Part shown: positions 44,918 to 47,929 of the stretch, one piece after another
How the letters are laid out: each line of letters starts with the position of its first letter
How positions within the stretch are numbered: the stretch's first letter is position 1
Assembly (NCBI GenBank): GCA_965603825.1
Contig: CBFDEM010000039.1
Coordinates: 372,001 to 436,000, forward strand
Length of the DNA stretch: 64,000 bases
DNA from: Blepharisma stoltei ATCC 30299
Taxonomy: Eukaryota > Protista > Ciliophora
Reading direction: 5' to 3'
Translations under genes and position numbers: made by a program
Notes under the pieces: model-generated
What the model saw: the letters and a program-made list of their open reading frames with translations, nothing else
Told to the model about the DNA's origin: nothing
Databases searched by the model: none

Positions 44918-45682
44918 CTAAGGAATATTATTTGTTTGTGTTTCGCCTGCAGGGGATTCTGGTTTTTGTTCTTTTATATTTTCTTCAGGAACCATTTTCC
45001 AAAAGAGTGTACAGTTTTTAAAAAAGCTTTTATAAAATGGATTTCCTGATGGAAAAACTGTTTTTTTGTGCTCATAAGTTGTCTGATTTGTGAAAATTAA
45101 AAATGTGTGGTATATTAATAATCCCCCTATATGCCAGAGACATAAAACTCCAATAGCAATTAAAACAGATTCAATAATATATAATCCTGTATCAGTTACA
45201 ATCCATGCTATCATATATATAGAATTTCCAATAGTAAATACACACTGGACAACAAGAAAAAATAATAAAAAAATAAACATCCTATGGTTGTTACGCCCAA
45301 TGCAATTTGCAACCCAATGGCAGTGATGGTCTCTACGATCAATACAGACATTACATATCTTACAGTGATGAGCTCTAGGCGGTTTTATAATATTACAAGT
45401 GGAACAAGTTTTCAGTAAAATAGTGTTTCCGAAAACTTCTATAATCCGGACAGGCTCTTCTGGTGGATTTGTCATTTTTATTAGAGTGCCGGGATTTATA
45501 ACAGCGATTCTTATTATCATTAGCATGTTGATAATTGAGAGTGTCAATGTGATAATGATCATAGGCGATTCATATTTATTTGATAATTTGGGAGATAAAC
45601 TAACCATTGTAGAACTGACACCTGCTATTAAGACAAGAACAGATATCACATATCATATTTCTTTGTTGTACTTGATTTCCAT
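44918..45682 (-). CDS. DHHC palmitoyltransferase, ~254 aa; 1 TGA=Trp
   Basis: CSTCNIIKPPRAHHCKICNVCIDRRDHHCHWVANCIGRNNHR, NQTTYE, NPF. Start extended to ATG 45682. Confidence 0.93.
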
Positions 45683-46021: not shown

Positions 46022-47929
46022 ATGCAAGAAGATATCAATATTCTCAATACAGATGAGCTGTATAAAGACAACTACAATGTAAAATTTATTTAGAAACATG
46101 AATTGAATGAAACTTTAAGGACTTCCGAAGATCTCATAGAGAAAGCCCAAGCCTTAAGAAAATATGCTAAAAATCAGAATTGCACAGAAATCGATGATCT
46201 CTTTGGCAAAATATTCAATTATTTAAAAAATGATGACCCTCAAGTCAAATACGAGTGCATCCACGCTCTTACTCATATTCTTATAAAAAATTACAAGACA
46301 ATAGACTTTGATTTACTCCATAAACTTTTTGATGAGCACTTTACATATCTAGTTACTCATAATTCAAAGGAGATACAGAAAATAACTATGAAATTCTTAA
46401 GCCTTGCTTTAGATTTACCTTATCACCCCAAATATATAGAGAATTTCAATGCATTTGTAGATTACATCTCCGAAAGCACTGATGAAGAAGGTAAAGCTTA
46501 TGCTGCAGAAATTTTGCAAACTTTATCATTTGATGAAATTGAAGAGAATGATGCTCTTAAACTTATTCCAGTCCTTATTAAAACGCTAGAGACATCATCA
46601 GAAAAAGATCTAACAATTTACTCAATTAGAATGCTTAACGATCTACTCTATAGATTCAATGATAAAGCTCTTGCAATAGCCATGGAAAATGTTAATTTAC
46701 CAGGAATTATTTTAAATAAATTATGAAATCAAGATGAAGAAGTAAGACAGCCTACTATAAAAGTGCTAGAGCAATTAAAAAAGAGTGAATTTTTTTCCCT
46801 TTATCTTGCTGATTCAAGTTTAATGACACTTATTGCTTTGCTAAGAAACGATAAATTAGACATAATAGTCCCTATAGCTAAAATAACCCACGAATTAGCA
46901 AGCCAAGGTCCTGAGTTTCGCAATAAAATGATGATTCACGGAATAGCTCCATTTCTAATTGATTCTTTAGCTTCCCATAATCAAGAAGTAAAAGGCGAAA
47001 TGCTAAAAATTATTTGGAGCTTTGCGATTGAGATGAATTATACTCATATAATGGAACTTGTAGAAAATAATTTAATTAGTGTTCTGTGTAGAATTGCGGA
47101 AAGAGATTATGAGCATAGGGAAAAAGCTTTGGATTGCTTGGAGATTTTACTAAATTCAGGTGACGAAATATGTAAAGCAGTTGCGGGATCATGCAGATTT
47201 TCAAAACTTTTATCTAAGCTTGTGGATGAAGATCAAAAGAATAGGGAAACCTGCATCAGGATATTAAAAAATCATTATCCAAATGTTCCTATTCATAAGC
47301 CTCAACCATATCTAAATCCATTCAGTAATAATTCTTCAATTTTTTATCCATCGAACCCTCAATTGCCAGTGACTCCAAATTTTGCACAAGCAAATAATTT
47401 GCAAAATAATATATTTCATATAAATCCTCAGCAACCTCAAACACAATTAGTAAACAGCCAAGCAGCTCCAAATAATTTAAACGATGGCTCTCAACAGCCA
47501 TTAAATCAAAATAAGCAAATCAAAATGGTTCAAGCTAAATTAAGCACTCAAAATTTAAGCAAGAAAAAAGAAAAAAAGAAAGCCCATAAAAGTGAAAAGA
47601 AGAATACTTATTTTAAAGCAGGAAAAGGCAAAAATACTGCAGGAGGCAATAGACAAAAACAAATTTTTCCTCCTGGAAAAATCTTAAGAAAATTAAGAGA
47701 AACAAAATACCGAGTTAGTAAAAGCTGCGGCCACTTTTTAAGTGGCGTTTTCGAGTATCTATGCTCTGAAGTTTTAGAATCTGCAGCAATCTCCGTGAAA
47801 GGAGAGAAAAAAAAATTAATTCAAGCAAGACATCTCCTGAAAGCTGTAAAATCTGACGCTGAGCTTGATTCATTAGTAGGCGAAGCTGTATTTGCACAAG
47901 CTGGCTATATTCCTAAATATCATAATTAA
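46022..47929 (+). CDS. ARM-repeat protein fused to a C-terminal histone H2A fold, ~630 aa; intron 46079-46093; 1 TGA=Trp
   Basis: Intron GTAAAATTTATTTAG; TGA 46724 joins the two track ORFs. ARM-like units such as HGIAPFLIDSLASHNQEVKGEMLKIIWSF. H2A fold FPPGKILRKLR...VFEYLCSEVLE...RHLLKAVKSDAELDSLV...AQAGYIP. Confidence 0.85.

Follow-up and report, generated by a model that had tools for sequence, protein, structure and literature searches.

An N-terminal armadillo solenoid joined to a C-terminal H2A fold in a Blepharisma stoltei protein defines a conserved family of chimeric histones

RESULTS

One gene encodes both an armadillo solenoid and an H2A fold

The window analyzed here, a 64,000-nt stretch of the Blepharisma stoltei ATCC 30299 genome (GCA_965603825.1, CBFDEM010000039.1, positions 372,001-436,000, forward), contains a single 630-codon gene at positions 46022-47929 of its plus strand, which is interrupted by a 15-nt intron and read through one in-frame TGA. 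Its product, referred to here as ARM-H2A, joins an N-terminal armadillo (ARM) solenoid to a C-terminal histone H2A fold through a low-complexity linker and a basic stretch, a layout that recurs across a conserved family of H2A chimeras. The features of the gene, in window coordinates, are as follows.

46022-46078, plus strand: exon 1, from the ATG at 46022, 19 codons, translating to residues 1-19 of the public protein P0001
46079-46093, plus strand: 15-nt GT..AG intron, phase 0, with an in-frame TAG inside, missing from P0001
46094-47929, plus strand: exon 2, residues 20-630 of P0001, with the TAA stop at 47927-47929
46724-46726, plus strand: in-frame TGA read as Trp230, W at this position in P0001
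46094-47281, plus strand: ARM-repeat solenoid, residues 20-415, ~9-10 repeats (AlphaFold2 [AF2], Foldseek, ESM Atlas)
46907-47281, plus strand: best-conserved ARM block, residues 291-415, with an ELVENN...CR..ERD motif (family alignment)
47282-47560, plus strand: disordered linker rich in N, Q, and P, residues 416-508 (AF2 confidence, composition)
47525-47527, plus strand: candidate internal ATG (Met497) for a 134-aa stand-alone H2A (read from the sequence)
47561-47659, plus strand: Lys-rich stretch, residues 509-541, K+R fraction 0.35
47663-47926, plus strand: H2A histone fold, alphaC, and docking segment, residues 543-630 (PF00125, phmmer against PDB, AF2)

An earlier note on this DNA, made from the sequence alone, had read one 630-aa frame once the intron and the TGA were resolved, and this frame proved identical to P0001, a public 630-aa protein named 'H2AFY_2 [Blepharisma stoltei]' at NCBI and 'Histone H2A/H2B/H3 domain-containing protein' in UniRef. 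The three translated pieces match P0001 exactly (residues 1-19, 20-229, and 231-630); the exon pieces were searched separately, while full-length analyses were done on the public record. In this species, UGA encodes Trp and introns are mostly 15-16 bp (genome paper, PMC9942806). An in-frame stop lies directly 5' of the ATG at 46022. In the homologues P0002 and P0005, a 15-nt GTAA..CAG stretch occurs at the aligned intron position and is read through in frame. The presence of the intron in the published gene model implies that spliced reads stand behind it, and hence provides indirect support for transcription.

Exon 2 contains no TAA or TAG in frame, whereas the alternative frames contain 54 and 38, and a 360-nt linker stretch remains open in only 0.02% (0.0002) of shuffles. 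These counts indicate that the ARM and H2A parts belong to one reading frame under constraint.

ARM-H2A proteins form a conserved family

Using only the ARM part (residues 1-420) as the query, we employed phmmer to search 1.84 billion representative proteins, which returned 15 proteins, 13 of them (query included) at E <= 1e-10. The 12 other long proteins (P0002-P0013, 380-662 aa) matched at E <= 3e-16 with 26-37% identity to the query, and in all 12 the ARM domain comes first, followed by a low-complexity linker without sequence conservation, a basic stretch, and, at the C-terminus, an H2A; the two short matches are fragments. A further search with P0002 added five members (P0024-P0028). Altogether, the search for relatives of the same architecture, which the earlier note had proposed for heterotrich proteomes, yielded ~20 distinct proteins; the relatives all come from assemblies of metagenome or SRA data, with activated sludge and lakes among the sources. 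The exhaustive phmmer search was needed to recover the family, as a less sensitive word-index search with a 400-aa piece or with the H2A region alone returned only the query protein. Residue-conservation and Pfam counts given below were taken over 21 members.

The exhaustive phmmer search of the 1.84 billion representatives found no relative of this ARM domain standing alone, and in a scan of metagenome contigs with the family alignment the ARM motif was present in 0/80 loci, all of which were ordinary H2A genes. Among the findings that the earlier note had named as overturning its reading were an assembly chimera and transcription of the two halves as separate genes. The recurrence of the layout in independently assembled sludge, lake, and other samples rules out the former, and the latter is very unlikely given that the fusion is conserved in ~20 independent assemblies. 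The ARM-H2A proteins make up one conserved family of H2A chimeras. While P0001 itself is public, it has not been described as an architecture, and no description of the ARM-H2A layout was found in the literature on Stentor H2A and armadillo proteins or on ciliate histone-fold fusions; what is new here is that the layout defines a conserved family.

Tiny introns of ~15 nt are a hallmark of heterotrichs, Stentor included. All seven of the fuller relative contigs that were read contain 15-nt GT..AG introns, matching the 15-16 bp typical of the Blepharisma genome (PMC9942806), and because these introns are of the heterotrich type, the family is probably heterotrich-wide, as judged from intron size and genetic code only. 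It may extend further still. One of the two fragments lies on a Logan ERR3980585 contig (L054, 1085 nt, GC 51%), where one reading frame, broken by TAA and TAG codons, runs through an ARM end, a basic stretch, and an H2A fold; it lacks the 2-residue L1 deletion described below. Given these in-frame TAA and TAG codons, the source organism of L054 probably has reassigned stop codons, in which case the family may reach past the group with 15-nt introns and the standard code.

The same neighbors surround ARM-H2A throughout the main environmental clade (L050, L052, L053, and the P0003 contig), namely OST48, PheRS alpha, SPC22, and a Syf1-like gene. The neighbors in Blepharisma differ, with an open reading frame (ORF) for a DHHC-type palmitoyltransferase upstream and a coiled-coil ORF downstream. 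The upstream ORF (44918-45649, minus strand) has the DHHC motif and several hydrophobic segments, is palmitoyltransferase-like, and appears unrelated to ARM-H2A.

The N-terminal domain is an armadillo solenoid conserved at its end

AF2, run on P0001 with the family alignment, modeled an all-helical repeat solenoid over residues 20-415 with a predicted local distance difference test (pLDDT) of ~90. In Foldseek searches this solenoid matched designed ARM proteins and importin-alpha (E 3e-10 to 2e-8; template-modeling [TM] score by target 0.50-0.56), at 13-20% identity and a root-mean-square deviation (rmsd) of ~8 A, and in the ESM Atlas it matched importin-alpha, Vac8, and armadillo with TM scores of 0.61-0.78. 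By all three approaches P0001 forms a right-handed superhelix of three-helix repeats, in agreement with the ARM-like helical repeats that the earlier note had recognized by eye. Pfam Arm (PF00514) has no match in P0001, which scores 25.5 for HEAT_2, short of the cut-off of 27.7; 9/21 family members pass the Arm cut-off, among them P0006 (37.7 bits compared to a cut-off of 20.6).

Conservation within the solenoid is concentrated in residues 291-415, where mean pairwise identity reaches 50%, compared to 27-29% in the rest of the ARM domain. The invariant ARM columns are P305, K319, E340, E343, N344, N345, C351, R352, R356, and C386. The net charge of the domain is -4 to -20 in all members. A search of the B. 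stoltei genome with the ARM part found no paralogue of the domain; the one faint match, to the ARM end block, lies at L032 (G000:C57:829080-829496; E 0.008, 28% identity over residues 268-407).

With 9-10 repeats in ~400 residues, the superhelix is of the class found in importin-alpha, Vac8, and beta-catenin. Membership in the importin-alpha family was considered and rejected, as no member matches PF01749 (IBB) and there is no conserved Trp/Asn array for binding a nuclear localization signal (NLS). Members contain 0-3 Trp in total, none of them among the invariant or nearly invariant columns. Unlike importin-alpha, the conserved residues of ARM-H2A fall in the last three repeats, and the resemblance between the two is that of ARM proteins in general, as the low identity and high rmsd of the Foldseek matches indicate. 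The earlier note had further suggested that importin-alpha-like repeats could bind the protein's own basic tail. This suggestion found no support, given that the IBB domain and the Trp/Asn array are lacking and that the tail is left undocked in the AF2 model, at pLDDT <40.

A variable linker and a basic stretch connect the two domains

The earlier note had described a low-complexity N/Q/P linker followed by a Lys-rich stretch, and composition bears out both: residues 421-500 contain 16 N, 14 Q, and 11 P, and over a third of residues 509-541 are K or R. AF2 models residues 426-539 as disordered (pLDDT 30-38). Across the family, linker and basic stretch together measure 25-159 residues and carry a net charge of +8 to +20 in all members, while pairwise identity in the linker is 22%. 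The Lys-rich stretch may be equivalent to the H2A N-terminal tail or to an NLS.

The position of Met497 just ahead of the basic tail raises another reading of the locus, in which translation from the ATG at 47525 would produce a 134-aa short H2A, resembling a normal tailed H2A, as the main product, and the long form would be minor or regulatory. We regard this as quite improbable. The linker frame is open here and in all relatives despite its unconserved sequence, the region around Met497 is a variable stretch of the family alignment with no conserved residue, and in the phmmer search this type of ARM domain was found only fused to H2A.

The C-terminal domain is H2A

The C-terminal part of P0001 is H2A by every test applied. 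Pfam Histone (PF00125) matches P0001 with 28.3 and 27.0 bits, above the cut-off of 26.4, and matches 21/21 family members (best E 8.5e-13). In a phmmer search of the PDB, the top 60 matches to P0001 are all H2A (E 4e-15 to 5e-13), and a profile of the family's histone part matches H2A and H2A.Z at E 2e-34 to 1e-29, compared to only 9.6 bits for an H2B segment. The full-length AF2 model contains a histone fold at residues 541-618 with pLDDT ~85, comprising alpha1 (546-554), alpha2 (562-589), alpha3 (597-606), and alphaC (608-613); pLDDT values for the H2A fold range from 85 to 96. When residues 500-630 were modeled separately, VIA aligned 87-97 residues to nucleosomal H2A with Z 10.3-10.9 and rmsd ~3 A (2.9 in the Z 10.9 case, over H2A residues 20-111), covering residues 14/20-111 of H2A chains from solved nucleosomes.

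At the acidic-patch positions E56, E61, E64, D90, E91, and E92, P0001 has E, E, E, D, A, and E, respectively. Its L1 loop is 2 residues shorter than that of canonical H2A, and the chain stops near H2A residue 112-113, ahead of K119 and the SQ region; PF16211 (Histone_H2A_C) has no match in P0001. The models include both alphaC and a docking segment. In each of these respects, that is, the complete H2A fold, the five retained acidic residues, the shorter L1, the early end, and a recognizable docking domain, the earlier note's comparison by eye was accurate.

The possibility that the protein is an annotation or assembly artefact, or a functionless, decaying fusion, was also considered. The name H2AFY_2 is an automatic label, and the Pfam Histone scores of P0001 are marginal at 27-28 bits. 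Set against this are the frame statistics, the confident models of both domains, and the recurrence of the layout in the ~20 independent assemblies, in which the H2A parts are 31-47% identical to canonical H2A, and such an explanation is accordingly hardly credible.

Residues that matter in nucleosomal H2A are conserved across the family

The H2A fold, with 46% pairwise identity, is together with the ARM end block one of the two best-conserved parts of the family. Y57, E61, D90, and E92 are invariant in 21/21 members, E56 is replaced, if at all, only by D, and 16/21 have an acidic residue at E64. R42 is R in 20/21 members and V43 is nearly invariant, while R29, R32, and R35 are mostly basic positions. 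The docking helix is kept across the family, I79 is invariant, and P80, L93, and L96 are retained. The 2-residue L1 deletion is present in 21/21 members.

Most members lack a C-terminal tail and end in a family-specific PESGN-type motif shortly past the docking strand. The exception is a subclade formed by P0008, P0025, and P0026, in which a longer H2A-type C-tail is retained. P0008 is the 1/21 that matches PF16211 (41 bits); the longer tails of P0025 and P0026 do not match it, and P0025 has an LLPKK-like motif. This longer-tailed subclade suggests a full-length H2A as the ancestor, with later loss of the tail in other lineages. In the tree, the H2A domains of the family are separated from every one of the 12 stand-alone H2As of Blepharisma (support 87/80), and P0001 is placed on a long branch beside P0007.

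The B. stoltei genome encodes other histone chimeras

A PF00125 profile scan of the whole macronuclear assembly (41.46 Mb, 64 contigs) produced 45 matches, which include ordinary histones and several other fusions. One (L016, G000:C24:12018-15350) encodes many TPR repeats followed by a complete H2B fold (TPR-H2B; histone match at C24:13518-13850), and TPR-H2B is a possible candidate for the partner of ARM-H2A. In another (L038, G000:C62:552265-553540, locus 129-875), a 118-codon piece resembling the importin-beta N-terminal domain leads via one TGA into an H2A; it scores 17 bits for IBN_N, under the cut-off of 21, and 49.8 bits for PF00125, and its H2A groups with canonical H2As on a long branch. 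Two further loci (L012 on G000:C23 and L024 on G000:C27) encode large proteins in which a VIT-VWA-like region at the N-terminus is combined with an internal histone fold of the H3 type. ARM-H2A thus resembles TPR-H2B, VIT-VWA_3-H3, and IBN_N-like-H2A in that a histone fold is fused to a protein-interaction domain, but the partner domains and histone classes of these other proteins are different.

The genome paper annotates eleven putative H2A proteins, and its Fig. S11 depicts proteins with histone domains. Discussion in the text is confined to the VIT-VWA_3 H3 proteins, which are described as weakly expressed in the supplementary information, and does not extend to the ARM-H2A architecture; the words TPR and HEAT are absent from the supplementary information (PMC9942806).

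DISCUSSION

The data presented above establish that ARM-H2A is one protein, that its domains stand in a fixed order, and that both of its ends are under selective constraint. By analogy of layout, the closest precedent is the Tetrahymena thermophila variant H2A.Y (TTHERM_01079200) and not macroH2A. H2A.Y is presented as an 'essential, chimeric H2A variant' (Song et al., Genes Dev 2012, reference 52 of PMC3380720), and PMC3380720 describes an N-terminal, non-histone leucine-rich repeat (LRR) domain with phosphatase-regulating activity joined to H2A, the H2A part being given as 47% identical to H2A.1 in PMC4122937. Both proteins are ciliate variants with a large N-terminal domain of protein-interaction repeats and a divergent C-terminal H2A. 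They differ in the repeats, LRRs in H2A.Y and an ARM solenoid here; no LRR family was found among the Pfam matches of the 21 ARM-H2A members, and no LRR-H2A among the 45 histone-fold matches of the B. stoltei genome.

The likeness to macroH2A (H2AFY) is limited to the pairing of an H2A with a large globular domain of non-histone type, connected through a flexible, basic linker. As the earlier note, which did not raise H2A.Y, correctly pointed out, macroH2A has the opposite layout, with the histone first; in addition, the lineage is different and ARM-H2A has no macro domain. The macroH2A identity implied by the automatic name was therefore rejected, given the lack of a Pfam Macro match and the N-terminal position of the extra domain. 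With mammalian short H2A variants (H2A.B, H2A.L, and related proteins), ARM-H2A shares fast evolution and the absence of a C-terminal tail, including the K119 region. In the mammalian short H2As, the acidic patch is reduced and the docking domain shortened; ARM-H2A, unlike these, keeps both the patch and the docking helix and has a 500-residue N-terminal addition.

Based on the retained residues, we favor the reading that ARM-H2A is a chimeric H2A that is built into nucleosomes and tethers an ARM adaptor there, in a manner like that of Tetrahymena H2A.Y, and we give this about an even chance. Incorporation is favored because the residues that are fixed across the family are those that matter on the nucleosome: the Arg of L1 that enters the minor groove, the basic face of alpha1, the acidic patch, and the docking helix. 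The earlier note had left the choice between a nucleosomal variant displaying an ARM scaffold and an H2B-binding chaperone or decoy with importin-alpha-like self-binding; its reading of the architecture stands, its self-binding proposal is not supported, and the retention of DNA-contact, acidic-patch, and docking residues inclines us toward the nucleosomal option.

Several observations weigh against incorporation. The H2A part of P0001 is only 35% identical to canonical Blepharisma H2A and lies on a long branch. Across the family, the canonical R77 is retained in only 7/21 members, H82 is Asp in 18/21, and the loop after the docking strand holds the family-specific PESGN motif; because of these changes at R77, H82, and the docking loop, contacts with H3-H4 may differ from those of canonical H2A. 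The altered docking region and the lost C-tail would also suit a histone-fold protein that acts away from the nucleosome, as a decoy or chaperone, with its H2A fold serving as a dimerization handle for H2B or TPR-H2B and its acidic ARM domain acting as a shield or carrier for the histone dimer and the basic tail, in the way that karyopherins handle H2A-H2B. The opposite charges of the ARM domain and the tail in all members, the fold class that the ARM domain has in common with importin-alpha, and the presence in the same genome of TPR-H2B and of a fusion of an importin-beta-N-like piece with H2A are each in keeping with such a protein. However, a dimerization handle would have no need of the acidic patch, the L1 minor-groove Arg, or the docking helix, all of which are kept over deep divergence, and neither the absence of an IBB domain and a Trp/Asn array nor the failure of the tail to dock on the ARM groove in the AF2 model fits a karyopherin-like carrier. 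A role away from the nucleosome, the main rival to incorporation, is, therefore, possible but rather unlikely.

If ARM-H2A is instead incorporated into nucleosomes, as we favor, its H2A part would pair with an H2B and enter as an H2A-H2B dimer. The basic stretch would take the role of an H2A N-terminal tail, or of an NLS, at the exit from the DNA gyres. This is where the H2A N-terminal tail leaves the nucleosome particle, and added N-terminal mass is compatible with wrapping. The flexible linker would act as a leash, allowing the ARM solenoid to swing away from the nucleosome, and the last three ARM repeats (residues ~291-415) would hold a putative partner on chromatin. The shorter L1 would alter the H2A-H2A' contact, and the absence of the C-terminal tail would probably make for looser DNA ends. 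The logic would be that of Tetrahymena H2A.Y, in which the N-terminal addition delivers a phosphatase regulator to chromatin.

A more far-reaching version of this proposal can be envisaged, in which ARM-H2A represents an old, heterotrich-wide, perhaps even wider, histone lineage that builds specialized nucleosomes with docking solenoids, the H2A.Y principle having then been invented twice, independently. In Blepharisma it would perhaps pair with TPR-H2B, so that a single H2A-H2B dimer presents both scaffolds and serves as the mark of one nucleus or stage, such as the micronucleus, meiosis, or the developing macronucleus. We consider this extended version unlikely. The role in nuclear dimorphism or development that was raised in the earlier note is speculation.

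Few histones bear whole folded domains. To our knowledge, the known H2A cases are macroH2A and Tetrahymena H2A.Y, and the conserved ARM-H2A family would be the third. If the reading we favor is correct, ciliates would more than once have fused a regulator-recruiting domain to H2A, and the conserved last three ARM repeats would offer a handle for finding the recruited partner. With ARM-H2A, TPR-H2B, IBN_N-like-H2A, and VIT-VWA-H3 in one genome, Blepharisma would also be a natural system in which to ask how much cargo nucleosomes can tolerate.

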